From contig JAQFVV010000003.1 of the NCBI GenBank assembly GCA_028023455.1, forward strand, positions 1,240,001 to 1,304,000: 64,000 bases of DNA. Reading direction: 5' to 3'. The translations under genes were made by a program, and so were the position numbers. Position 1 is the first letter of the stretch. Every line of letters starts with the position of its first letter. This document shows, piece after piece, positions 1,243 to 57,227 of the stretch. Under the pieces are notes generated by a model. That model was not told the origin of the DNA. It did no database searches and saw only the letters and a program-made list of their open reading frames with translations. This DNA is from Epiperipatus broadwayi. Lineage: Eukaryota; Animalia; Onychophora.

Positions 1243-1284
<42 letters not shown>
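1243..1284. repeat. (AAT)14 microsatellite, 5' flank of LINE A
   Basis: Perfect AAT repeat read directly. Confidence 0.98.
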
Positions 1285-1285
<1 letters not shown>

Positions 1286-1470
1286 TAGCACCAGAGGTCA
1301 CCTCTAGCTTACCACTTGTTCAGATCGTGCTCCTCAATTTATTAAAATAACATAAAATATACCGATTACAGGTATAAGTTTTATATCTCTAATAACTATA
1401 AAATAGAAAACTAATAGATTAATTAAAGAAAGAAGAGAAATACAAAAAGGCAACACAGATTGATTGCATA

Positions 1471-2957
1471 ATGGACTTAGATGTCCAACATAGAGCCATG
1501 ATGTCTGCCAGCTCAGACACATTTAAAAGTTCTTATGCACAAGTTGCAAAATTACCATCAACGGTTATAAAAAAAAGTGAAAATAATACGTGATTGTTTT
1601 TCTCAAGGAAAATGCAGCTAGCACCTAGATTTCACCGTTCTACAGCAGGAGATCTGATGAAACTAGATCTTACCCCAAAAACCACTGAAACCTATGTTAA
1701 CGCAATAAAAGAGCCTTGGTCTAATGATAGCCTTAAAAAAATATCTGAAGTGTTTAACCAGACCATCCCTAGGGAACTCTTCAATTCATTTAAACATTTT
1801 TTCACTGAATGCTCCGTTGTCATTGCAATTACAGATAGAAACTGTTTGCTTTATAGTTTCCCTAAGGAGCTTCTATTCGAAGAGATAAATAATAAAAACC
1901 TATGAAATTTGATAGTTCACGTGGGAGATCATCTGAATCTGCATTATCTGGCTATTGAATTTGTAAATGAAGAAAGCAAAGAATTGTTCCGACAAGAAAT
2001 GAAAACTCTGGGGCAATATGCATTAGTTGTAGTCAATCCCAACAGAGAACACTTTATTACTGGTTTAATTAAAAAAACTTACCTAGGTTACTCAGAAACA
2101 GATTTCATTAAACTTATGAAACCATTCGGGCAGGTGATAGATTTTCAGCCTTTACAGATTAAAAATACATCCATCCCAATATTTAGTAACAATTATAGAT
2201 TTAAAGTAAAACTGGGAGAGAACATTAATCCTGAAAATATTCCAACACAAGTTGCAGTTGAAGAAGCGACATTATTTCTTGTTATAAACGGTCTAAAACC
2301 GCAATGCTTTCATTGCAAAGAATGCGGTCATCTTATTAGCAACTTTCCGGCTTTATATTGTAATAATTGTAATATGAGTGCATCTCCCTTACATCAATGC
2401 CCAAAAGAAGACTTTCATAGTAATCAAGAAGTGACTATAGATGAGGTTGTGCAATCGACAGACCATAATATTGAGGGAAAAAATGATATTGACATTAGAA
2501 ATAGTGGAAAGGTGATTCTACATATTACAGGGTCCAATAGCATTGAAGTTTCCTCCTCTCCTAATCTGGAAATCTCACTCCCTCTTAATAAAACAACTCT
2601 CGAAATAATGGAACTGCTCGCAATGTTATCGTCCCCACAAATTCTAGAAACTTCACAAATCACTAGAAAACCAGGTCGGCCACCTAAAAAAAATCAGGTA
2701 ATAATTCCAAGAAACTAATGGCTCTAGAATGTGAAAGTAGTGATAATGATTCCCCTCCTCCAGTCTCTAGGAAAAAAGCTAACATCACGCCAAGTTACAA
2801 TGCCTCTCTAATTGCCACATACTCATCAGAAAATAGTCCAATGGAAGAGGAAACTGATAGTATTACAAACATAAATAAAGTTTTACTTGAAAACCCATTC
2901 ACAGATAGGAAAATGAGATCCAATGATATTTCTCTCAAATCTACAGACAATAATTGA
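1471..2957 (+). pseudogene. ORF1 (gag-like nucleic-acid-binding protein) of LINE A
   Basis: ATG 1471 is in frame with ORFs 1594-1905 and 1909-2718, broken by TGA at 1591 and 1903. It has the SYAQVA motif and knuckle CFHCKECGH. A probable frameshift in an A8 run joins ORF 2718-2957. Clearly homologous to 6926-8050 (FN.TIPR.LFNSFK.FF). Confidence 0.8.
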
Positions 2958-3088
2958 ACAATGCATATTTATTGATCCATTAAAATATACTACAGATTTC
3001 CTTATTAAAATATTTAACTTTATTTTAGAATAAAACTTTCCTATGCTAGGCTTAGATTCTGATATATATGTGCACACATATACAAATA

Positions 3089-6000
3089 ATGGATATTAAA
3101 ATAGGAGTTTTTAATGTTAGAGGGTTAAACTCCCCACAAAAAATTGACCTCCTCACTAAATGGTACGACATTGTTAAACCGCAGATAATGGGCATTATCG
3201 AAACAAAGATCTACAGTGGCTCACTAATCAACACTACAGACAAGCTAAATTCCAACGGCCATACAGCCTTCTCAAACACATCTGACACTCCATCAGCGGA
3301 TACAGGCATTATCATTGATAAAGCCTGCCCATTTAGTTCTTTCAAAATCCTACATATTGCTGCGCACTTGCTGATAATTATATTTACTCATAAAGCCATT
3401 ACCTTAAACATAGCAATTGTTTATATCCCCCCAGGTCCCACTATTATAAATAGAATTATACAAACACTTAACTCTAGGTTCATAAATGCTATGTATCTGG
3501 CGATTATTTTGGGAGATTTCAACATGACATATCAGACCTTCACCGGCAAATGGTTACATCAACTGTCCTTTTCGATGATGAGTGGAAGAGGCTTTCTGCC
3601 AGAAAAGTCCGTGTCATTTAACAATGGTAGACCTTCATCACTTATAGATCCGGTTTTCTATTCGCCATCATTACACAACATGATATGCATTCGATTAAAG
3701 AATTCTCCCCTCTCTGATCATGCAGCTGTTTTAGTGTCACTGGAAATTAATTTTGATAATAGAACAACAATTAATACAGGAAGAACCATCAGAGGTCTAC
3801 TACCATCACACACACCAGAATATCTTTTTTCAGAAGTATACATATATCTTCACAAGTTGAAAAATATTACAATGGATCCAGTCCAAGCATGATGTGCTTT
3901 TACTAACCTTCTATCATTTAATATTGATCATCTTACCAGGACAACAACATCCCCAACAAAACTACTAAAGCTTATGGATGATACCTATAAAAAAATTATT
4001 GGCACTTCTCAATCAAATCTCGATCATCCCTGTCTGATGGCTTTAAAGAAGAAATATCAAGAGTTAACAAACCAGCTTAAAGAATATATCTCCATTAAAA
4101 AGAAAAAGTTATATTTAAATAAGCCACACATGTATACCAGAAACTTCATTAGATGGGCGCTAGGCCACCCCTCCCAGGTGCGAGTCCCAGCAGCTATTAA
4201 AGTTCTAACTGAAATTGTCTATGGAGATTTTATGTTGGAGTGGCTTTACATATTGTATAGAGAAAAATTCCAGAGGGTATCCTCTCCAAGTTTAATGGCC
4301 TTTTCATGAGATAGATCAGAAAATGAATTTAAAATTTCTTTAAAAGATTTCATTAAAAAAATAGAAGCGATGCCAGATTCATGTCATTCTGGCATAGATG
4401 GAATTTCCAAGTTTGTATACAAACATAAATCGCTGCACAATATATGCTTAACCTAGTCTCCTACCTCACTAAGGACATCTATAAAATACAGGGCTTAAAT
4501 CAAATTATGCATGTGCCATTTTAATCTCAAACACCACTAACCTACATCCAATTTCAATGTGCTCCCTTGGCATAAAGATAATAGAATCAGTGATAAAAGA
4601 TAAAATAGAGCCATTCATTTTGCCAAACCTATCAAAAATGCAATTTGCCAAAAAAAAATCCTCAACAGGACAGGCAGCCTTTCTATTCAAGTCAACTATA
4701 GAAACTGTTAGAGATAATAAAAAATACAGTCCAGTTGTTATTCAACTAGATATTGCAGCCGCTTTTGACATGATTTCCATCAGTACTCTTCTTAAACCTC
4801 TGCAAAAATACTCAGTTCCGAACACATATCTAAACTTGCTTGCTAACTTGCTTTTAAACCGTGAGATTTATGTTTCCCTAAATGGGAAAACTTCACTACC
4901 AATAGTGCCACACCAGTCCATTCCTCAGGGATTACCTCTCATTGCCTTACTGTTTACTGCCTATATCAACCCTCTTATAAAAATAATAGAAAATGAATTT
5001 TCAGGAATCTACGTGCCTACCATCAATGACAACATCTCATGTATCGCATATATGGATGATATAGCAATATTTCTATCATCTCAAAAACAAATTCCAAAAC
5101 TTCTTAAGATACTTAATAATTTTACAAAAGAATACAAGCTAACATTTAATATGGAGAAATCGTGTGCATGGCAGATCTTCACCAGTAATAGCATTACTAA
5201 AGTTTTCAAAGGTAGACAAGCGCATTTCTTGGGTTCAACTTTTATTTACGACATTCATCTATGAGATCGATCATACAGAAAAATTTGATAGAGAAAGTGG
5301 AAAAGACTGTCAATTCATTCTTCAAAGCCTACCTCTCTATATATACAAAAATGGCCTTGCTTAACATGCTTGTGATTACAAAAATCTCTTATATTACTCC
5401 AACAATCATTTATACCAAGGCATTTACAAATAAAATAGACTCCTTATGCAGAAAATTATTCTGGGAAAAAAGATTTCAATATCAATAAAACATCTAAGAA
5501 AGCCCCTTTCACAAAATGGCCTTGGCCTTCACTCAATACATGTCTTCAGGATACAAAAAACATTGAACATAATATCTACACGTGCACAAAAATTCCCATT
5601 TTTAGAAATTGCTGCCAAGATTACCCCTACAGATAGATGACCTCCTCTCCAAGGATATCTGAACACACTACTTACACCATTATTAACAATTCACACTCTT
5701 AATTTTAAACCACCACAAGCCAAATATAAATATTGGGAAGTTTATCAACTTCTACATCCAAATCAAGATGATGTACAAACTCCACTTCATATTAATAATA
5801 AACAATTATGTTGCAAATTCAAACTATGGTCAATTGAACCAAAATGTTTTAACTTTCTCCTAAAGATAAATCTAGACTCACTACCTACACAACACTTTTT
5901 GAAATATCAAAGAAACTATAAAGATATAGATGATATATGTAATCTTTGCCATAGGGACTCGGAGACACAAAACCACCTTTTTTTTTCATGCTCAAGTCTA

Positions 6001-6282
6001 GAAAACATTCGTGAAATTATTAGCACTTCACTCAAGGATAAAAAAATCAATATGAAAACCCTTTTTGACTCTTTTAAAAGAGGTATCTTTGCTGAAATAA
6101 GAATGTGCACATTTTTACTCCATGCCTTATGGTGTACAAGGTGTAATTTCATATACAATTATAACCCTAGAAGACATCCAAACACGTTCAGAAATAAGCT
6201 GCAAACCATACATGAAAGAGACATGAAGATTACAGATCAATCTAAGTACATTGACACCTGGAATATACAAGAACTTATATAA
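3089..6282 (+). pseudogene. ORF2 (AP endonuclease, reverse transcriptase, C-terminal CCHC finger) of LINE A
   Basis: APE motifs FNVRGLN, ETK, VYIP, LGDFN, LIDPVF, SDH. RT motifs GIDG, LDIAAAFD, IPQG, AYMDD, FLG. C-terminal CNLCHRDSETQNHLFFSC and LWCTRC. Several stops and frameshifts. Confidence 0.92.
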
Positions 6283-6597
6283 AAGCACTAACAAAAAAAA
6301 CTATATCAAATGTGGATCCTTGTGCCAGTTTTAAAGCCAACTGACACAAACTAGATGTATTCCTGCTTTAATTTAATTGAAGTATATCTAATTGAATATT
6401 ATCATATGATTGAATGATCATCATTGTTTTTGTTGAACTGTTTTTTTTTAGATACTTCTAGTTTGATAACTCATACAGTTACTGATCAAATCATTGTACA
6501 TATGCAGTTTTGTGAAACCAATTTATATGTAAGAACTATGTGTCAAATGTAACTTGTATAACCTTTTAGAGTACTAATAAAGTTTATCCTTTGAAAC

Positions 6598-6636
6598 ATC
6601 ATCATCATAATAATAATAATGATGATGATGATGATG

Positions 6637-6704
<68 letters not shown>
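6598..6704. repeat. Compound (ATC)/(AAT)/(GAT)/(AAT)n microsatellite between LINE A and LINE B
   Basis: Read directly; ORFs 6574-6759 and 6619-6867 are translations of it. Confidence 0.97.
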
Positions 6705-6705
<1 letters not shown>

Positions 6706-6925
6706 GGGAGTTACTATAGTTACTATAGTAAAGAACGGTTCTCTAACAAATATTATCATCGTTATTATAGAAAAATATCAGTTATTTCGTCAAACCATAA
6801 GGTAAAACTGACTTATATATTATTTATATATAATAACATAATTTTTCTACATAGTTTTTTTAAATAAAAAATCTCAAAATAATCATATTTTAGAAAAAAA
6901 ATAATCCAAAGAAATACGCCATAAT

Positions 6926-8050
6926 ATGGCGATTCCAAATAAGAACGCACAAATTAATTGTTCTACAAATATGTCTATCGAATTTCCAATTCTAGCTATC
7001 AATAATATAAACAAAAATAAATCGTATGCTAGCGTTACCAAAACTATTAATAATCCAAATAATAAATTAGTGTTAAATGAATATCAAAAAACACGTTTTC
7101 GAACGTCTACATTAAATGACATACAGGAATTAGACTTAAATACAATAGACAATTCTCCACCCCCACTTACCGAATATACACAGGAAATGTTAAATAAGAT
7201 TTCTGAAAATTTTAATAACACCATTCCTCGAAATCTTTTTAATTCATTCAAACGTTTTTTTTCTCAAAGATCAGTCATAATAGCTGCAACGGATTCGAAT
7301 TGTTCACTCTATAGATTTCCTCGTCAAGCACTATATGATGCAATAACCTCACATAATTTATGGGAAACAATTTCTAAAATAGCAGATCTCACTAATCTGA
7401 GATATATAGCAATTGAATTTTTTGAAACAAGTCAAAAAGAGCGTTTTCAAACACTTATCAAAACAATACATAATTACATTCTAGTAATAGTGGACGAAAA
7501 TAAACAAAATATTATTAGCGGTATACTCAAAAACACATATTTTAACTACAAAATAGAAGATTTTCAAAATATGATGCAACCTTTTGGAAAAGTGTTAAGC
7601 CTACAAGGAATATATTATAAAGACACACCCATACATATACCATCAAATAATTACGAATTCAAAATAAAGTTGCACTCAAATATTGATCCAAATAATATCC
7701 CAACGCAAATATTAGATCAAGAAGCAATGCTATGTTTATATATAAGAGGATTAAAACCTAAGTGTTACGCTTGCGGATTAAGAGGTCATCTAGCAATTCA
7801 ATGCAAGGAGTTTTCTACACTTAAAAAAAAAAAACAGGTCAATGAATCAAACATTGAACATCAAACTGACATGTCAATAGCAGATAAATCAAAAATTATC
7901 ATACAAAATAATGAAAACAATAATGATCATGAGGCAAAAAATTCAAAAGAAAACGATCCCAAAAATGAAGATAATAGTAACAACAATGCTCACACAACAG
8001 AAAAACAATCTGAAAACTCAAATAACTCAATGAATATAGGAGAAAAATGA
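6926..8050 (+). CDS. ORF1 of LINE B (gag-like, CCHC zinc knuckle)
   Basis: 374-aa open frame with SYASVT and CYACGLRGHLAIQC (Cx2Cx4Hx4C). It probably once extended to about 8376 via now-frameshifted low-complexity sequence. Confidence 0.8.
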   Translation: MAIPNKNAQINCSTNMSIEFPILAINNINKNKSYASVTKTINNPNNKLVLNEYQKTRFRTSTLNDIQELDLNTIDNSPPPLTEYTQEMLNKISENFNNTIPRNLFNSFKRFFSQRSVIIAATDSNCSLYRFPRQALYDAITSHNLWETISKIADLTNLRYIAIEFFETSQKERFQTLIKTIHNYILVIVDENKQNIISGILKNTYFNYKIEDFQNMMQPFGKVLSLQGIYYKDTPIHIPSNNYEFKIKLHSNIDPNNIPTQILDQEAMLCLYIRGLKPKCYACGLRGHLAIQCKEFSTLKKKKQVNESNIEHQTDMSIADKSKIIIQNNENNNDHEAKNSKENDPKNEDNSNNNAHTTEKQSENSNNSMNIGEK

Positions 8051-8546
8051 TGAAAACATAGATCCAGAAATGACTCATATTATAATTAATAAAACATCAA
8101 CAGAAATTATGCAAACTATAATACCGCCACAGACAATCAACACCATCACAAGAAACTAAAAGAAAAACAGCAGGACTCAAAACAAAGCCTGATATTAAAA
8201 AAATTGAAACAGATTACAAGGATAATAAATCAAGCATATCTGATCTGCCAACTGAAAACATACAAATAGAATTTAATAACTTTCAACAAAATATCAAGCA
8301 GAAAAAACATCAATTTAAAAATACATCATATGAAACAAGATCATCAACTACACAAACCATGCCACAAGAACTATAACATAAGAAGATTAAAAAAACAAAA
8401 AAACAAATCATAATTTACATATAACCAAGGAAAATTACAATCATCCAACATACAATAAAACTACTTTATGAAAATTAAAATATCAGCTTTCAACATTAGA
8501 GGAATAAATTCAATATCAAAACTACAACATCTTAGTAAATTATAAG

Positions 8547-9290
8547 TGTAGTGTTTGTAAAAATGGCAGACATTTTTGTGCACTCCAGAAAAACTAGAAT
8601 TTATTCGTAAGGCTGTTTTTAGATTGCGCTCTGATAGCTGAGGAATTTAATTAGTGCATTGATGTAATGGCGATCAACAATTCCTAGAAGTATTTGCTAA
8701 TTACAAATGCTTCTAGATAAGAGACGTTACCTTATTGGTCAGTGCATTGATTGAGATCATTGCAGTTGTCAGAGAGCGAATAGAAGATGGTGTAACATCT
8801 AGCATTAATTAGAGGACAACTCCAGTAGAGAGCAGTCACGCAGTAGTGAGTAGCGAGCAGTATTGGAGAGACGTCTGTTTAACATCAGCAAAGATATCTC
8901 ACGTCAGTGCTGGTGGTAAATGACTAGCACACCCAGTGAAAATGTAGTTCACGGGTGTAGCTGAAAGACACCACAGCAGAGAAGAGCATTAGTTGCAAGA
9001 AGAGCATTAGTTGCAAGAAGAGCATTAGTTGCAAGAAGAGCATTAGTTGCAAGAAGAGCATTAGTTGCAAGAAGAGCATTAGTTGCCGAGAAGGGCATTA
9101 GTTGCAGAGAAGGGCATTAGTTGCAGAGCAGGGCATTAGTTGCAGAGAAGGGCATTCGTTGCAGAGCAAGGCATTTGTTGGAGAGCTTCGTTAAGAAAGA
9201 ACAGCGTGGGAATTGTATAACGTTATTTGCTGACCGCACAGTATGACTTGCAGTTATAACCTTGGCACAGTCATAAGTGTGGATATTACA
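8547..9290 (+). repeat. 5' LTR (744 bp)
   Basis: Direct repeat of 9584-10255; differs by four extra 18-bp units and about 26 substitutions counted by eye. Confidence 0.95.
8981..9184 (+). repeat. 18/19-bp minisatellite in 5' LTR (GAAGAGCATTAGTTGCAA-type, 11 units)
   Basis: 5 x 18 bp + 6 x 19 bp. The 3' LTR copy (10018-10149) has 1 x 18 + 6 x 19. Confidence 0.95.
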
Positions 9291-9291
9291 A

Positions 9292-9302
9292 TGGCACAGT
9301 CG
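9292..9302 (+). promoter_or_regulatory. Primer binding site, tRNA-Ser-like
   Basis: TGGCACAGTCG 1 nt after the LTR; 10/11 match to TGGCGCAGTCG, the complement of the invertebrate tRNA-Ser(AGA) 3' end used by gypsy-group elements. It is followed by ATTTGAACCT, resembling the T-arm complement. Confidence 0.7.
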
Positions 9303-9567
9303 CATTTGAACCTGGGAGTAGCGAATACGTTGAACTATAAGTTTAGCCGTAGACGGAGAAACCGGGCGAAAATGACAATCCCAATTAGTAACGTTAACAT
9401 CGGTGAAAGTTTGGAAATAAAATGTTTGTGCAATTAACATCGGAAGCTAACGTAATTGGAAAAAAAAAAAAAGTTTCAGCAGCTGTTAAATCGCATATTT
9501 CTGAGTGAAATAACAGGAAAGTAGCGAGAAAAAAACAACACCAAGGAATAGCAACAAGGGTTTTTCT

Positions 9568-9583
9568 GGAGTGGAGGGAGGTG
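9568..9583 (+). promoter_or_regulatory. Polypurine tract
   Basis: GGAGTGGAGGGAGGTG immediately before the 3' LTR. Confidence 0.85.
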
Positions 9584-10255
9584 TGTAGTGTTTGTAAAAA
9601 TGGCAGACATTTTTGTGCACTCCAGAAAAACTAGAATTTATTCGTAAGGCTGTTTTTAGATCGCGCTCTGATAGCTGAGGAATTTAATTAGTGCATTGAC
9701 ATAATGGTGTTCGACAATTCCTAGAAGTATTTGCTAATTACAAATGCTTCTAGATAAGAGATGTTACCTTATTGGTCAGTGCATTGATTGAGATTGTTGC
9801 AGTTGTCAGAGAACAAATAGAAGATGGTGTAACATCTAGCATTAATTAGAGGACAACTCCAGTAGAGAGCAGTCACGCAATAGTGAGTAGCGAGCAGTAT
9901 TGGAGAGATGTCTGTTTAACATCAGCAAAGATATCTCGCATCAGTGCTGCCGGTAAATGATTAGCACACCCAGTGAAAATATAGTTCACGGGTGTAGCTG
10001 AAAGACACCACAGCAGAGAAGAGCATTAGTTGCAAGAAGAGCATTAGTTGCCGAGAAGGGCATTAGTTGCAGAGAAGGGCATTAGTTGCAGAGCAGGGCA
10101 TTAGTTGCAGAGAAGGGCATTCATTGCAGAGCAAGGCATTCGTTGGAGAGCTTCATTAAGAAAGATCAGCGTGGGAATTGTATAACATTATTTGCTGACT
10201 GCACAGTATGACTTGCAGTTATAACCTTGGCACAGTCATAAGTGCGGATATTACA
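9584..10255 (+). repeat. 3' LTR (672 bp)
   Basis: Direct repeat of 8547-9290. Confidence 0.95.
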
Positions 10256-13200
10256 ATAAGTATTGTAAAACCACATATACTTGATCTACTAGAAACCAAA
10301 ATATATAGTGGTTCACATACAGATACATCCAACTACTTAAACAAGCATGGTTTTTGCAGTTATTCACGTGATGCTTCAACACCATCAGCAGGTACTGGAA
10401 TAATTGTAACTCCTACAATCATATTTGATAATTTTAAAATATTATACATAGATTCTCACTTATTAATTACAACGTTTCATAACCGTATCACACCCATTAA
10501 TATCATCTTTGTCTACATTCCACCAGGACCTACAGTAATATCATATATCATTCTCACAATAAACTGTTAACATCAACTTCTTATCCTACTATATTAATTG
10601 GTGATTTTAATATGAGTTATTACCAATTTACAAACAAATGGCTTCACCAGCTAACAATACCTCTTATGAGTGGAGAAGGATTCCTACCTTTACATTCAGT
10701 ATCATTCCACAACAAACGATTTGCAACACTGATTGACTTATGCTTCTACTCACCAATGCTTCATCATCTAATAGATATTAAGTTAAATCCATCTTCATTC
10801 TCTGATCACTCAGCACAAACACTTATAATAAATTTAATAAATTTTCAAACAACCACCACTCAGCTAGAAAAAACAATCCGTATGCTCACTCCAACATCAA
10901 CCCCAGAATTCCTATTTTCAGAAACATATATAATGCTATGAAAACTAGATATACTATCATACCTGATCTAGTACAAAAATACTTGGCATTTATGAATATA
11001 CTACCATTCAACATAAATCATCTAACATACAACTTACCATCACCTTTAAGGCTTCTAACAATAGCGGATGAAATACACAAAAGAATTACAATGTTACATC
11101 CTTCACATAACTCACTGGAAAATATATACAAGCTCACACAAATTTACAATAACACATGTAACAAACTAAAGGAATACATAACAATTAAAAAAGCAAAAAT
11201 ATGTCTCTCACAAACACACACATGGTCAAGAGCATATATTAGATGGGGTCTAGGATATCCACCAAAATTGAGAGTACCAATGGCAATAGAAATAGAAGGA
11301 ATGACCTATGCAGGACAGAATATGATAATACCCATATTTAATTACTTCAAGAAAAAACTACAAGAACATAAAAGATTCACACCTTCAGATAATTACTTTG
11401 GACAACCAGAAACAAATTATCCATTTAACATACAACAATTTGCAGATAAACTTAATACAATTAAAACCACATGTCATCCTGGAACAAATGGTATACCAAA
11501 ATTTGTCTTCGCACATTTGAGCCAATTCACATCAAAATATATTTGCAACCTAGCAAATCATCTCTTTCAAAAAATCTACAACCTTAAAGAACTAAATACC
11601 ATAGCCATAGTGCCATTTAATAAAAAAAATTAATATATCAACACTTACCAATGTAAGACCTATTTCTATGGGTACATTAGCCATTAAAATTTTAGAAAAA
11701 GTCATCAAAGATCAAATTGAACAACACTTACTTCCACTTATATCACCTCTACAATTTGCAAAAAAAGAATCATCTACAGGACAAGCAGCATTACTCTTTA
11801 AAACTATTATGACTACAATACAAAAGCAAAAAAAAATGCACCAATAGCAGTACAATTAGATATTCAAGCAGCATTTGATTCAGTGTCAATCAAGATACTT
11901 CTTAATAAATTAGCCAATACCACCTACACTACTCTATGTAATTGCCAATCTTCTCCTTAATAGACAAATTCATATCACACTCAATGGAAGGAAATCAACA
12001 TCATTCACTCCATCACAATCTATTTCACAAGGATCACCACTAAGTTCTCTCCTCTTCACATTCTACATAGATCCACTAATAAGAAAAATACAACAAAATA
12101 TAGCTGGAATACAAATTCCACACACACAACAAAATATCCCATGTTTAGCATACATGGATGATATCATATTTTTTTTAAAATCACACAAAGAATTTCCAGC
12201 ACTACAAAAAATATTAGATCAATACTCATCTGAATTCAAACTAAAATTCAATCCTAATAAAATAGCAGCTTGGTTCATATATACAACCAAAACATATACT
12301 AAATACTTTCAAGGCAAACCCACTCCTTTTCTTGGATTTCCATTTTACTTGGGAACAAATGGTATGAGGCAAAACATACAAAACAAATTACTTGAATCCA
12401 TAAACAAAATTTCAAACTCTTTATCAAAAGCATACCTATCCATATACTCAAAAGTTCAATTATTCAACATGTTAATTTCCACAAAAATGACATATTTTTC
12501 TCCAATAATAAATTTCTCTAAACATTTCAAATCAAAAATATCATTATTATGCACTAAACTACTATGGGGACGCAAAGCCATTGTAATATCCGCTAAATCT
12601 CTTAGCAAATCTACAGAAAACAATGGTTTAGGACTGCACACTATTTACACATTCCATATACAGAAATCAAACAACATATTAGCATCAACAATAAGACAAT
12701 TCCCTAAACTAAAATGTTTGCTCACAATTACACCAACGGATACTCCACCTTCAAATTCACAGTATTTATCTTCACTAATACAAAGTGTCACAACAATATC
12801 TACTCAAAATAACATAGAAGCAACATATAAATATTCATACTGGCAAATTTACAAACTATTATACCCAGAAAATCCTGGAGACACACAAACAACAATGCTT
12901 GAAATTAGCAATTATCAATTATTGAAAAAATTCAAAAAATGGTCATTAGAACGAAAATATTTTGATTTTATATTAAAAATAAACCTTTATGCACTACCAA
13001 CATTATATTTCCTTCGATACAGACGTCTATATAAAAACATTGATCCTTTTTGCAATCTTTGCCTCACGGCAGAATTGACACAACAGCATATTTTCTATTC
13101 ATGCACAAGTTTATCAAATATACGCAGATTGTTAATAGAAACTTACCAAAGGAAAAATACATCATTAATAAATATATTACAATCTTTTAAAAAAAACTCT

Positions 13201-13560
13201 ACCCCAACAATACGAGCAATAACTTTTTTACTATATGCATACTGGTGCACAAGATGCTCATTTACATTTGGTAACAATACAAGAAGACATCCAGCAACAT
13301 TTACAAAAAAACTTCAACAAATAAAAGAGCGGGATTACAAAATTAGCGCTCCAGACATTGCAGCAGCAACATGGTCACTCATAAGACAGCCATCAAACCT
13401 ATAACAGAATAACCATCAAACAGATTATTTAAAATGTAAAATACAATTGATTTTAAAATTTAGAACTTGTTCCAAAGTCCTATGATTGCCTATGTAACAG
13501 AATGCAATCGTCTGTTGTAAAGAATCTATGTAACATTTGTTTAATAAAATTCTTTGAAAC

Positions 13561-13627
<67 letters not shown>

Positions 13628-13665
13628 GTAGTAGTAGTAGTACTAGTAGTAGTAGTAGTAGTACT
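13561..13665. repeat. (AAT)22 followed by (AGT)n/ACT microsatellite, 3' flank of LINE B
   Basis: Read directly. Confidence 0.97.
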
Positions 13666-16444
13666 AACCTTTTAAAAGTTTAATTTACAAAAAAATATTT
13701 TAAATCAGAGTTATTATTTATTTATTTCTATTTCAGTAAATGTAGAAAATATCTACTATAATTTTTGTCTGTGTTTATTTCTACTTTTCCTTTATTTTAC
13801 ATATATATATATTCACATACACTATATTAGTGTGTGTGATATAACCCAACTGGTTACAATATATATATATATATATATATATTTAAGCAGTCAGATCTAA
13901 GTTCAATCCTAGCTTTATAATATCTCACATGTAGCCCACTTCAAACCCTAGTACTAACCATGAATTTCCGATGCAATGGGGTTTTATACATTCAATACCC
14001 ACTAGTTTCATTAAAAATAGTATTATACAAAAATATGTTAAAACCAAGTAGTTTGATATTTAAACTAGTGAATATCATTAATAAATTCATGATAAAATTA
14101 TTCATGAATTTATATATATTATAACTGCATGGATTGTGCATATATATTTATAAATATTTAAATATATATATATTCGTTACAAAGTTTCATTGCGTCGGGA
14201 ATTTTTTATTTTACTTTTAAACAGTTTGTTCAAATTTTAGTGATTAAAAGCTACATTCTTTTGATAAGCTTTCAAATTGTCCTTTTCCAAAGACAATGGG
14301 GAAAATTTTATTAATTAGCAAAAAGATAATACTTTAAAATGTAAGGATGGTTCCTAATTAAAATCATTTTTTAGATTTATAAATTCATTTTCTAATTAGA
14401 AAATGAATTCAAAGTTAATGAGTTTGGAAGCCTTATCGAAGGAATGTATCTAAAATCAATTGATAAAAAATTGTAACATTGATAAAGCAAGAAGCATTAG
14501 CCTTAAGGCATGGAGAATCAGAAATAGGCGGGAAAGCAGAGGACAGTATAAATAGCCCAGAAAAGTTTGGAGAGGGGGAAGCCATTTTTGTTTTAGAGAA
14601 GTGCTACTAATCTAGGTGCATCTTTAAATTATGAATTGCAATAGTGTTTCCATCATGGTGAAGGGCTAAACTTTGGGAGTCTGATTGCTTGGCCTGGAGT
14701 CCCCCAGAAGATCTTTAATGTAGCTGCAAACTAAACCTTTCCACACCGATCCTGCTGCCAAAATCCTGAAAGAATCAATCAAAATGATATTCATCTAATT
14801 CACAAAATACGCTGCTACATTTCAACCAAATTGGACTCTACCATGTAAACTAAGGAGCCAACCATGGAAGGAATGGAATTTAAGAATAACTTTCTGGCCA
14901 GTTTCCGAACTTTATTTTACACTACCTTTAAATTATCTACTGTTAAAACTTTCTCTTTGCTTAATGTATTAATACTATCTTAAATTATGTAGTAATTCTC
15001 TATCTCTATCTCTAGTCTTTAAAATTAATATCTGTTAACTTTTCTTTCTTACAATGGCGGTTCATTTCACTAACTGTATTATATATACATTTATTGAGTA
15101 ATTATTAATGTATTTTTTTTATTATATACTGATAAAACTTCAACTCGATAATAATCTCTTTCGTTAAAATTCTCTCATGAAGATAATCTAATATTAAGTT
15201 ATAATAATTCTTGCCCACTAGAGCTAACTTAATACAGTTCTATTAATTATCGAGTTGAAGGATTTATTAAATGTTGCTATTTTTATTAATGGGTAATAAT
15301 AAATTATTAGCCCAGTTTCTAACCTGTGTCCCCGGCTATTTTATCTAGTTTACAAATGTTTATATATTCATATTTATAATCTTATAATGTTTTGCAAAAA
15401 GGTCGATAAAGGAATTAATGTCAATATATTCTTATTTAAACATTATACTTTATATTAATATTCAGGGAGGGCATGATGTTTGGGGCATGATTAGTATAGT
15501 TATATAATTACGTTAGTACTTTTAGTTAAAGCATGTTTGACTTTAATTTAACTTAATCAGGTCATCATGTAGAGCATTTCTTATATAAAATGGGTTTTAT
15601 TATTTAAACACGATGATTACCAAGTCATCATTTTCTGAACATTGCTGATCCGAGCCATCTAATGCTTCATAAGCTTGTCGATCTTCATGTTATTTTAATT
15701 ATATTAGGAAGAAAGCACTTCCTCTCTCACTCATTTATATTGGAACACCAAAGGTTTGTGGCTATGACCCGGCCTGGTTTTCCCTGTGTTCTATGGATTC
15801 TTTATAGGGCATCAAAGACTTGTCAAATACAAGCCACCCTGCTATTTTTTCAAATCACCGACAAGCAATTATTTCTCATATTTATTTTTATAGCTCTTAA
15901 GTCGTCAGTACCATTTATTTCTCAGTTCCAGTAAAGCCCGTTCTCATGCTTGTAAATCATGATGAATTGATTTTATTAAAGTCAAACAAATTCGTATTCA
16001 TTTCTTATAAAATAAACTCTTTGTTAAATAGTAAAGTTATGCCCTAAATATTTATCTTGCTCATTGTGAATTGATTTGTGAATGTGAAAATAAATCTCAC
16101 ATTCTTTCATTTAAAATTAGAATCAGAATTTCTGTCATAGCCAAATACCTTTATCCACCTTTATTTTCTTGTCAGGGCATAGACATATATAATCCTCCTA
16201 GAATATTATGTAATACTTATTGGCATATAATAAGGACTGCCATTCTTATTGTAATTATAAATTCCGTTTAAAGACTAGAGATAATCTATATAATCATAAT
16301 CTAAAAGTTGAACAAAAGTATTATTATTATTAAACATTTTATTAACATATTTGGTTTTTTTACTTTCTTTCTTATTCCATAGTTATTTTAATATTAATGC
16401 TTGCTGTCTGTATTGGCAACCCGAACATATATATATATATATAT

Positions 16445-38005: not shown

Positions 38006-39640
38006 CAGCGTTTTCCAACCTTTTTTGGCTCACGTACCACTTGGTAGTACATCACGCTAAATTGTACCACTTCATAAAAATGATTGTATTTCGGGAAATT
38101 TGTTATTGCGAGTATGTTATTTTATTTGCATTATAAATATTATAGGGTGACCATGTATGTATTCATATCTCATAATGAGACAAATTACATTGAAACATGC
38201 CTAAACATCATGCCAGATTATAAACTCACTGAAATTATAAACTCACTGTAACATATTTATATGTATGTGTTTGTTCAAAGTTTCATATTTTTTCCAAAAT
38301 AATTTATTAAAGATTACATTATTACATTAAAGGTTATTTGGTACATATTTTGTTCAATGTGTTTTTCTCATTCCTTCATTTGGTTTTCCCGAATTTGAGT
38401 CTGTTTTCTTTTATTTTTTGGAGCATCTTGCTATTGGTTGGGCCATGGAGAGGATAAATCCAGCATGTCCCAAGTTATGCTAAAAATAACCTCAGGGGTT
38501 ATCAGGCTATCTCTTGTTCTTGTTTTCTTTATATTGTTCAGTATGAAGTTAATAGAATTAAAATTTTGATGATTAAATACTAGCTTACATCTAGTAATCC
38601 ACAATAGATGATCAAAAATTAATGAGAGTCTAATTTCTGGGTATGATCCTTTTCTGATACATTCTTTCAAATTAAATAATTTAGATTGATTTGCCTTGAT
38701 CCGACTCATTATTTATCTACTATTTTGTCATATTTCGTTTACTAATAAATGGTTTTAATAAAAACACAAAATTATAAAAACCAATTAGTATATTTTCTTA
38801 TCATAATCAAATATTTTTATAAAATAAATTTAATGAGATCTTTGTGCTTGTTTCGAACAACATAATTTTTTGAAATTTGGTTCAAAAGATGCGAGGTATA
38901 CCCTTAAGTCTACAGCTGCATTCAATCTATTTCGATACTTATTTTTTTAAAAAATATATGAAGAAAAAGCTCTTCCTACTAATTCCATAATAGTAAATGG
39001 TAATAATAATTTAAGAGCTTTCTCCGAAAGTTGTTCATATATCTTTAATGTTTAACCAAAAATTAATTAGATTGTGTCGTTTGAATTCTACTTATAAAGT
39101 TCTGTCACATGATAATTCTATTAAATTTTCTTTATCCTTTATTGATAATGATGTAGCTTTTTCCAAATTTTCTGCATAGAAGGGGTTTGAAATCCAATTA
39201 TCATTTGTGTTTTCGGGTTTTGGAAAATATTCCATGAAAGACAATTTTAATCCTGTTAAATGTGCTATTATATTTTCTCGTATATTTTGAGACAGACTAA
39301 CCTTATTTTCAAACAAAAAAATATGTAGAGTTTCGAATACTTCCAGTTGATTGTTTTTGATACTTATATATATTACTGTTTCCAAAATTCTAATTTCTTA
39401 ATCATACTTTCAATTTTATCATTAACATTAAAGATCATTATCGACTGTACATATTAACAACTTTACTGTATAATATTATTAATTAAAATAATTTTTATGA
39501 ATTATAGGAAAAAACGTTTCTATATTTTTATGATTTCATTTTTTTTTTTATGTCCGCCATTATTGATTATTTTTCGTGTACCACCAACCAGCAACTCGCA
39601 TACCACCAGTGGTACATGTACCACAGGTTGGGAAACACTG
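38006..39640 (-). mobile_element. Non-autonomous hAT (Buster-type) deletion derivative, 1635 bp
   Basis: TIRs CAGCGTTTTCCAACCT / AGGTTGGGAAACACTG; perfect 8-bp TSD TCTTAGAG (37998-38005, 39641-39648). Minus-strand transposase C-terminus at 39385-38829 (WISNPF, LIELSCD, DLRVYLASFEPNFKKLC.SKQAQRSH*). Confidence 0.93.
38431..38700 (-). pseudogene. C-terminal ORF2 fragment of a third Tx1-like family, inside the hAT element
   Basis: IRLSLIFDHLLWITRCKLVFN...TRTRDSLIT...ITWD aligns with IRMCTFLLHALWCTRCNFIY...HERDMKIT...TWN (LINE A) and the equivalent in LINE B. Confidence 0.75.
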
Positions 39641-56478: not shown

Positions 56479-56884
56479 AACTAACTAAAGGAAAAATAAA
56501 AACATAATAAAAACACACAATTACTTCTCTATAAAACTGCTTTAATTTTTCAACCAGCAAACTGGTTTTCATCAGAAAACACAGCAAAATGGCTATTTCC
56601 AGAATTTAAACGCTAAAATATTACAGATAGTTATGTATCAGATAACAAAACTAATTTCTATAGGTTAAACATCTTTACAAAACTTCATATAAAAAATACA
56701 AAAAAAAAATTCTTTCACAAAAAACTTATTTAAAAAACTAAAACCATACATATTATTATATATTAAAATATATCAAAAAACCAATAAAAATATACTATTA
56801 TATATGTACTCACCAAGAAAATTATATATATATTCTACTATATGTATTTTACTATATATATATCTTATACATATATAATGTATA

Positions 56885-56923
<39 letters not shown>

Positions 56924-57227
56924 GATGATGATGATGATGATGTATGGTTTAGTTTTTTAAAATAAGTTTTTTGCGAAAGAATTTTTTTTGTATTTTTTAC
57001 ACAAAGTTCTGTAAATATTTTTTATATAGAATTTTTTAAAGATTTTTAAACTATAGAAAATAGTTTTATTATCTGATATGTAACTATCTGTAATATTTTA
57101 GCATTTAAATTCTGGAAATAGCCATTTTGCTGTGCTTTCTGATGAAAAACAATCTGCTGGTTGAAATATTAAAGCAGTTTTATAGAGAAGTAATTGTGTG
57201 TTTTTATTATGTTTTTCTTTTAGTTAG

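Follow-up and report, generated by a model that had tools for sequence, protein, structure and literature searches.

The two LINEs at positions 1243–13663 of the window (the whole 64,000-nt stretch of Epiperipatus broadwayi DNA analysed here) are two dead, related elements lying head-to-tail within one AAT microsatellite. It is probable (roughly 80%) that they are copies of two families of a single young, multi-family lineage of the L1 superfamily, which integrates almost only into (AAT)n and whose sense strand is the AAT strand.

Two dead LINEs in one AAT microsatellite

Tandem Repeats Finder and direct reading gave the order (AAT)14, LINE A, a CAT/AAT/GAT/AAT array, LINE B, (AAT)22 and (AGT)n, all features being on the forward strand. 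This upheld the layout described in the initial annotation, namely tandem LINEs embedded in (AAT)n. The (AAT)14 (1243–1285), the 5’ remainder of the target array of LINE A, follows DNA (756–1242) without a second match anywhere in the 5.6-Gb genome, and the earlier statement that this array adjoins unique sequence was correct. LINE A (1286–6599), a full-length dead copy, begins with TAGCACCAGAGG and terminates with CTTTGAAACAT. The inter-element array (6600–6705; called as (CAT)4(AAT)4(GAT)6(AAT)22 at 6597–6705) comprises the tail of A and the 5’ flank of B. LINE B (6706–13560), a full-length dead copy of the second family, begins with GGGAGTTACTATAG and terminates with CTTTGAAACA. The tail of B and the 3’ remainder of the target array (13561–13663) consist of (AAT)22 at 13561–13627 and then (AGT)n at 13626–13663. 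The window flanks at 34–755 (left) and from 13879 onward (right) were high-copy repeats. Both flanks were searched genome-wide; their unique parts had no second copy and the assembly contained no empty-site allele. Another array, (ATT)12(ATG)7 at 56886–56942, was rejected as the tail of a minus-strand LINE, since it lies between two inverted-repeat arms with no adjoining LINE coding sequence. The GC content of the genome was approximately 25%, and AAT runs were abundant.

The window copy of A was 96.4% identical to an intact copy (L015). In comparison with an intact copy, it had five in-frame stops and six indels within its ORFs. ORF1 (1471–2957), with a CCHC zinc knuckle, was interrupted by two stops (1591 and 1903) and by the loss of 1 nt at 2686; in ORF2 (3089–6282; APE, RT and a zf-RVT match), three stops (3890, 4307 and 5638) were accompanied by deletions at 4427, 4521, 5217, 5463 and 5473. 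In B, ORF1 (6926–8050; 374 aa, with a CCHC knuckle) was open and shared 47% identity with ORF1 of A. ORF2 of B (8468–13404) started with the APE region at 8468–8546, continued from 10256 and contained the RT at 11611–13401; it was split by an LTR insertion and several frameshifts, which render this copy dead. Pfam matches in the window copies were APE, RVT_1 and zf-RVT for A, and CCHC and RVT_1 for B. The proteins of A and B were homologous end to end with 47–55% amino acid identity. The value for the APE domain, 51%, agreed with the earlier estimate of about one half, from which A and B had been regarded as separate families, a view that was supported.

The insertion in B was a nested TRIM-like LTR element of 1.7 kb (8547–10255), private to the window copy, with LTRs at 8547–9290 and 9584–10255 (TG...CA). 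Each LTR contained a 19-nt minisatellite, and a purine tract preceded the 3’ LTR. The element was flanked by a 5-bp target duplication (ATAAG; 8542–8546 and 10256–10260). Other copies of B lacked the insertion, with 8540 joined straight to 10256.

(AAT)n as the insertion target

(AAT)n is the insertion target of these elements and not merely their 3’ tail. The scoring of flanks in genomic copies with 5’ junctions, set beforehand as a test in the initial annotation, found (AAT)n directly upstream of A in 24 of 26 independent near-full-length copies. Among the first 56 exact 5’-end sites of A genome-wide, 51 had (AAT)3 or longer at most 11 nt from the 5’ end, against only approximately 0.3–0.4% of background positions. 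Runs of (AAT)6 or longer started about once per 62 kb of the genome. Both flanks were (AAT)n in approximately 91% of the copies that retained their 5’ end; with AAT on both sides as the rule, a slippage tail alone is insufficient, as had been argued from the window. The 5’ junction was fixed in phase: in 19 of 20 copies, the upstream array closed with ...AAT-A and the next base was not A. The junction contained 2–11 extra nucleotides that differed from copy to copy. Beyond the arrays, the flanks were unrelated between loci, except for one duplicate pair (L004 and L007). Three 5’-truncated copies of sister families also began directly at (AAT)n. The genome additionally contained 5’-truncated copies of A and many of B. 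For B, AAT was found at the 5’ end in five independent genomic copies, a bare count without a proper denominator, and the three exact 27-mer sites of its 5’ end genome-wide were too few for a rate.

Elements of the lineage stack in one another’s arrays. Approximately 8 of the 26 arrays upstream of A were preceded by the 3’ end of an earlier LINE of the lineage and are visibly its tail, so part of the 5’ AAT signal is due to stacking. The proposal that the elements insert into each other’s flanking arrays was borne out. It had been made for two families; the common target of A and B stood, and the lineage proved wider, with at least nine related families seen. In oriented sequences, 89 arrays of (AAT)5 or longer were on the element strand versus 6 on the other one. 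Fragments of closely related LINEs that lay in the flanks were all oriented like A, and in genome-wide lists, which included 701 3’ ends of A, the 3’ end pairs less than 10 kb apart were on the same strand in 7 of 7 cases.

The blocks ATGTAAC, AATAAAG and CTTTGAAACA before the tail were common to nine families. The 3’ end motif followed by (AAT)3 had 3,938 exact genomic sites, versus 23 for a control pattern. The 3’ arrays (median 174 nt) were longer than the 5’ arrays (median 48 nt), in 17 loci versus 7. The register of the 3’ junction of A varied between copies (GAAACAT-AAT, GAAACA-ATAAT and GAA-TAAT). RNAalifold predicted zero pairs in the shared 3’ end, indicating that its conservation lies in linear motifs rather than in RNA structure. 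An AATAAA signal was located approximately 15–20 nt upstream of the tail; the element RNA may accordingly end at GAAACA, without any AAU tail.

Relationships of the lineage

Three genomic copies (L008, L013 and L015) had intact ORFs, an ORF1 (CCHC) and a 1073-aa ORF2 (N-terminal APE, RT and a putative C-terminal, cysteine-rich zinc-binding domain of the zf-RVT type). In the intact ORF2, Pfam matched Exo_endo_phos (residues 8–211), Exo_endo_phos_2 (107–214) and RVT_1 (482–725), while zf-RVT (PF13966; 26.0 bits, E = 1.5e-5) scored just below the 27.5-bit cut-off. C960, C963, H972 and C977 were invariant when this ORF2 was aligned to 13 distant relatives. The catalytic residues of APE and RT were conserved. 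The Pfam search detected neither RNase H (PF00075) in the intact ORF2 nor an endonuclease domain in the elements other than the N-terminal APE.

The best solved-structure match of the intact ORF2 was LINE-1 ORF2p (E = 4e-24), with one entry aligned across residues 4–823, and no relatives above approximately 30% identity were found among 1.84 billion proteins. An RT tree, obtained by a quick search with long-branch warnings, placed A and B on the L1-like side, apart from the jockey/I-like rows (SH-aLRT 95–99). It excluded them from vertebrate L1, from plant L1 and from an unlabelled zf-RVT group (93), and their stem measured 2.17 changes per site. The RNase H-bearing rows formed a separate clade. 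A Xenopus match used as the seed for a Tx1 reference turned out to be an ordinary vertebrate L1. The elements are APE-type, two-ORF LINEs and probably L1-like, in a comparison whose RT references (vertebrate L1, plant L1, the unlabelled zf-RVT group and the jockey/I-like rows) included no labelled Tx1 sequence; the Tx1-like label of the initial annotation is a candidate placement. They may further represent an undescribed, deep-branching APE clade of the L1 superfamily, with at least nine families in one 5.6-Gb AT-rich genome, each strictly specific for (AAT)n, with a junction of fixed phase and a 3’ end signal common to all. We propose this tentatively, at slightly less than even odds.

Microsatellite-specific LINEs are already known, and the principle is not new. 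Kibi, Koshi and crocodilian Tx1 families, which belong to the Tx1 clade, target (TC)n, (TTC)n and (TTCC)n/(TTTC)n (PMC4494074, PMC3812793). Like these, the elements described here are APE-type LINEs, probably of the L1 group, that are specific to a microsatellite, and the target-sequence-specific insertion characteristic of the Tx1 clade is evident in the 5’ ends of A. They differ in that they target (AAT)n, in that both the target and a conserved 3’ end are common to nine or more families, and in their RT, which is on a long branch and grouped with no labelled clade. Dong (R4 clade; Bombyx, Anopheles and Biomphalaria) targets (TAA)n (PMC3812793). This target repeat is common to Dong and the present elements. 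To our knowledge, Dong is the only known (TAA)n-specific LINE; its one ORF encodes an RT and, C-terminal to it, a restriction-like endonuclease. These two R4-clade traits were absent here, the coding capacity being divided between two ORFs and the APE lying at the N-terminus of ORF2, and the initial annotation was right to consider the endonuclease APE-type rather than of the restriction-like type of Dong. Because endonuclease and ORF structure differ, the target they have in common is a case of convergence.

The I factor of Drosophila (I clade) terminates in TAA repeats (PMC3747384). The present elements also have TAA-type repeats at their end; unlike the I factor, they lack an RNase H domain and have AAT on both flanks. 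The I factor encodes RNase H and is not known to target a microsatellite; its repeats are thought to guide the start of reverse transcription. Same-orientation, head-to-tail stacks in a simple repeat or in the tails of earlier copies are formed by the telomere-repeat LINEs TRAS1 and SART1 (R1 clade) and by Zepp of Chlorella, which targets poly(A) tails. The stacking is alike, but clades and target repeats differ from those of the elements described here. An L1 lineage of Cuscuta with (TAA)n-rich satellite DNA was rejected as a precedent, since it targets the satellite monomer and not a microsatellite (PMC8091179). A survey of the searchable literature turned up no APE/L1-type LINE reported to target (AAT)n.

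Target choice and its consequences

We hypothesize that the APE nicks the (ATT)n strand and that the ...ATT-3’ end released in this way anneals to the (AAU)n terminus of the element RNA and primes reverse transcription. Slippage of the RT on the terminal CAU/AAU template would lengthen the tail, from which variable (CAT)n tracts and longer 3’ arrays would follow. The 5’ end would be joined, with 2–11 nucleotides added, at another break, which would be made in the AAT strand at a specific phase of the repeat. Every new tail would enlarge the target, and elements would accumulate head-to-tail, like A and B. The target preference may be encoded by the APE, as proposed in the initial annotation; much of the specificity could come from an (AAU)n tail of the RNA that base-pairs with the (ATT)n strand once this is nicked.

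It is rather unlikely, if worth serious consideration, that the elements do target (AAT)n without this being encoded by the APE. The endonuclease would then have only a loose, L1-like T-rich/A preference, and only nicks in (ATT)n would pair with the (AAU)n tail and yield insertions. Tail and target are indeed the identical repeat, the target is common to two families only approximately 51% identical in the APE domain, and the varying 3’ junction register of A would be expected from pairing in different registers. Tail pairing leaves the fixed phase of the 5’ junction unexplained, however, which points to a sequence-specific second-strand break. This explanation overlaps with the one preferred here, and the two are not mutually exclusive.

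Explanations without any targeting fared far worse. If (AAT)n were only the elements’ own 3’ tail, the 5’ arrays would be tails of upstream copies joined via template switching or recombination, as the arrays with a LINE 3’ end of this lineage ahead of them might suggest. Many 5’ arrays nevertheless come after DNA that is unique or not from a LINE (for example, those of the window copy, L006, L016, L018, L027 and L029), and some are only (AAT)5 long. Moreover, a concatemer formed by switching should lack AAT at its outermost 5’ junction, in conflict with the 91% of 5’ ends that are AAT-flanked. This improbable account is already largely refuted. Even less credible is an expansion of microsatellites from AT-rich seeds at both ends after insertion, or the segmental duplication of one composite unit. 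A genome with approximately 25% GC and rich in AAT runs would favour the former and the duplicate pair the latter, but both are contradicted by the unrelated flanks at the remaining loci, by the fixed strand and phase, and by extra junction nucleotides that are copy-specific.

With targeted integration into (AAT)n as the preferred reading, families that are approximately 50% identical and have one target and one 3’ end signal provide a comparative handle on endonuclease versus tail pairing. The lineage comprises thousands of copies, some of them intact, and produces head-to-tail LINE stacks and lengthened AAT arrays, through which it shapes the microsatellite content of this large genome and the difficulty of its assembly. 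If the elements do form an undescribed clade, they would be a convergent counterpart of Dong with its restriction-like endonuclease, and a natural system in which endonuclease reading could be separated from RNA-tail pairing in target choice.

Anatomy of the tandem pair and its surroundings

LINE A (1286–6599), terminating in CTTTGAAACAT at 6599, was preceded by (AAT)14 (1243–1285) and followed by a mixed array, (CAT)4(AAT)4(GAT)6(AAT)22, that ran to 6705. LINE B occupied 6706–13560 and was followed by (AAT)22 (13561–13627) and then (AGT)n up to 13663. This is the layout described in the initial annotation, and it was seen at the coordinates claimed. Pfam detected APE, RVT_1 and zf-RVT domains when pieces of A were scanned; for B it reported RVT_1 together with a CCHC knuckle. 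The GC content of the window was approximately 25–35%; the genome assembly comprises 5.6 Gb in 18,588 contigs.

A genomic copy of A at locus L015 was intact, with an ORF1 of 495 aa and an ORF2 of 1073 aa, and both ORFs were also intact at loci L008 and L013. The window copy was 96.4% identical to L015 and, read in register with it, had stops at 1591, 1903, 3890, 4307 and 5638 and deletions within the ORFs at 2686, 4427, 4521, 5217, 5463 and 5473. In B, ORF1 was open (6926–8050), while ORF2, beginning at 8468, contained several frameshifts and was interrupted by an insertion (8547–10255). The insertion was private to the window copy, since 8540 joins 10256 directly in at least eight other genomic copies of B. 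Nested in the APE region, it has the anatomy of a TRIM-like small non-autonomous LTR element: direct repeats of roughly 700 bp (LTRs, 8547–9290 and 9584–10255) with TG...CA termini, a purine tract 5' of the 3' repeat, and a 5-bp duplication (ATAAG) on either side. Each LTR contained a 19-nt minisatellite (8976–9185 and 10013–10150) of unequal copy number; leaving out this variable part, the LTRs were roughly 86–94% identical. Because they differ by about 6–14%, the insertion is not recent.

Further repeats were observed in the window. A repeat of approximately 720 bp (34–755) had thousands of copies at 92–96% identity, an internal inverted match of 34 nt (375–408) and an adjoining inverted partial copy just upstream of the window. 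A high-copy dispersed repeat (13879–15600 and further; >8,000 first-look candidates, 83–89% identity) started approximately 215 nt past the tail of B. At 56700–57000, (ATT)12(ATG)7 was rejected as a LINE tail, being the core between inverted-repeat arms of approximately 43 nt (~56710–56752 and ~56943–56985); the whole resembles a short fold-back or MITE-like element built around a microsatellite.

Families and phylogenetic placement

In stop-free pieces matched over their full length, the proteins of A and B were 47% identical in ORF1, 51% in APE, 50–60% in RT and 47% in the C-terminal region, and scarcely any nucleotide alignment was obtained. A and B are two families within one lineage, in agreement with the earlier description of separate families roughly half identical in APE. 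The lineage is broader than these two: in the window and flanks, nine distinct families (A–I) had 3' ends that could be aligned over three blocks (ATGTAAC, AATAAAG and CTTTGAAACA), of which CTTTGAAACA directly precedes the tail. No conserved RNA fold was predicted in this shared 3' end.

ORF1 carried a CCHC knuckle, and ORF2 comprised APE (residues 8–214), RVT_1 (482–725) and a borderline zf-RVT match (925–979; 26.0 bits against a cut-off of 27.5). The APE and RT catalytic residues and a C-terminal C-C-H-C were invariant in the alignment with distant relatives. By sequence, the top solved structure was human LINE-1 ORF2p (E 4e-24), with R2 behind, and the nearest ESM-Atlas clusters all had RVT_1, Exo_endo_phos and zf-RVT. 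A word search gave no relatives above ~25–33% local identity, and when 1.84 billion representatives were searched exhaustively with HMMER, only three matches fell below 1e-30, all at 22–26% identity. In a maximum-likelihood tree (40 rows, none labelled Tx1; LG+C20, quick search; B as one unbroken piece), A and B formed a pair (100) whose stem measured 2.17 changes per site. They were placed on the L1-like side, apart from jockey/I-like rows (95–99), and outside a group (93) of plant L1, vertebrate L1 and unlabelled zf-RVT elements. This supports a predicted position on a long branch within the L1 superfamily; the Tx1-like affinity suggested initially is a candidate placement. A weak LINE fragment at 38455–38712 (−) matched the C-terminal region of A ORF2, with 27% identity across 86 aa (E 9e-8).

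Association of family A with (AAT)n

A whole-genome search retrieved 25 near-full-length copies of A (93–97% identity) with 1.5-kb flanks; the duplicate pair L004/L007 was counted as one, and alignment artefacts at L010 and L025 were read by eye. (AAT)n, from (AAT)5 to approximately 400 nt, adjoined 24 of 26 independent 5' ends. The exceptions were L004, with only ATAATA upstream, and L005, where the array degenerated into AGT and GGY. A 23-mer from the 5' end of A had 115 exact sites, and in 51 of the first 56 listed (91%) (AAT)3 lay ≤11 nt upstream. Outside the LINEs, only 0.3–0.4% of window positions qualify likewise, and runs of (AAT)6 or longer have approximately 90,800 starts in 5.6 Gb; the enrichment at A 5' ends is therefore >200-fold. 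Three 5'-truncated copies of sister families also began directly at (AAT)n (L002 at 7294, L007 at 6952, L025 at 6890).

In 19 of 20 copies the upstream array finished on AAT-A, and the next base was not A (chi-square test of equal phases, p 4e-8); the same phase was visible in the A 5' junctions listed by the genome-wide search for (AAT)3 upstream. Copy-specific nucleotides, 2–11 in number, separated the array from the conserved CACCAGAGG. Among the family A loci these were often AG/AT/TAG stutters, such as AGAGAGATAGG, ATATAGG and ACATAGG; untemplated addition, a cap-related origin or microhomology are candidate sources. In sequences oriented by A, 89 arrays of (AAT)5 or longer lay on the element strand versus 6 on the opposite strand.

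Closely related LINE fragments in the flanks were all oriented as A. Seven upstream flanks held the 3' part of another lineage element and seven downstream flanks a full or truncated one, which bears out the suggestion that arrays are built by insertion into each other's flanks. In genome-wide lists, 3'-end pairs <10 kb apart were on the same strand in 7/7 cases. Among them, on one contig (C8:1401986–1413431, −), three lineage 3' ends at 5.7-kb spacing on one strand form a stack of three apparently full-length elements; the other close pairs, likewise on a shared strand, were 217 nt to 7.3 kb apart.

Exact sites of the 3' end motif joined to (AAT)3 numbered 3,938, versus 23 for a control pattern. 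An A-specific 3' 20-mer had 701 sites versus the 115 exact 5' ends; the majority of A copies must therefore be truncated at the 5' end or diverged there. Arrays were longer at the 3' end (median 174 nt versus 48 nt; 17 loci versus 7; by a rough measure, Wilcoxon p 0.02). Many A copies had a variable (CAT)4–13 tract between GAAACAT and (AAT)n, and the 3' junction register differed among copies.

Probable integration into microsatellite DNA

Of the first 56 listed 5'-end sites, 91% were AAT-flanked, and many 5' arrays, including several at the retrieved loci, were preceded by non-LINE DNA. The DNA left of the 5' array of window A had no second match in the genome, consistent with the unique flank noted initially. 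The reading of (AAT)n as only a tail therefore fails, in line with the point in the initial annotation that a slippage tail alone is not enough. Expansion of arrays after insertion, or the spread of one unit by segmental duplication, likewise fails: the flanks are independent, strand and phase are fixed, and the junction nucleotides vary from copy to copy.

Directed insertion into (AAT)n is well supported as a real finding, and strand- and phase-specific integration via target-primed reverse transcription is the best-supported mechanism. As to where the specificity may reside, a sequence-specific break is suggested by the constant phase at the 5' junction, and the identity of tail and target repeat, together with the variable 3' register, argues that primer–tail pairing contributes. 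Slippage of the RT on a terminal CAU/AAU template, plus the remainder of the target array, would give CAT tracts, varied registers and longer 3' arrays. An AATAAA signal lies 15–20 nt upstream of the tail, however, and poly(A) directly behind GAAACA may be the true end of the RNA; all flanking AAT would then be target DNA.

Several microsatellite-specific APE LINEs have been described, namely Waldo (ACAY), Mino (AC), Kibi (TC), Koshi (TTC) and crocodilian Tx1 (TTCC/TTTC) (PMC3812793, PMC4494074), and TAA repeats are found at the end of the I factor (PMC3747384). Dong targets (TAA)n (PMC3812793), as here, but its clade, R4, bears an RLE (PMC4640811), whereas this lineage has an APE. Full-text literature searches, in a library lacking Repbase Reports, yielded no LINE of APE or L1 type that targets (AAT)n, so a database entry for one may already exist. 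The lineage joins the established microsatellite-specific APE LINEs, a principle that is already known.
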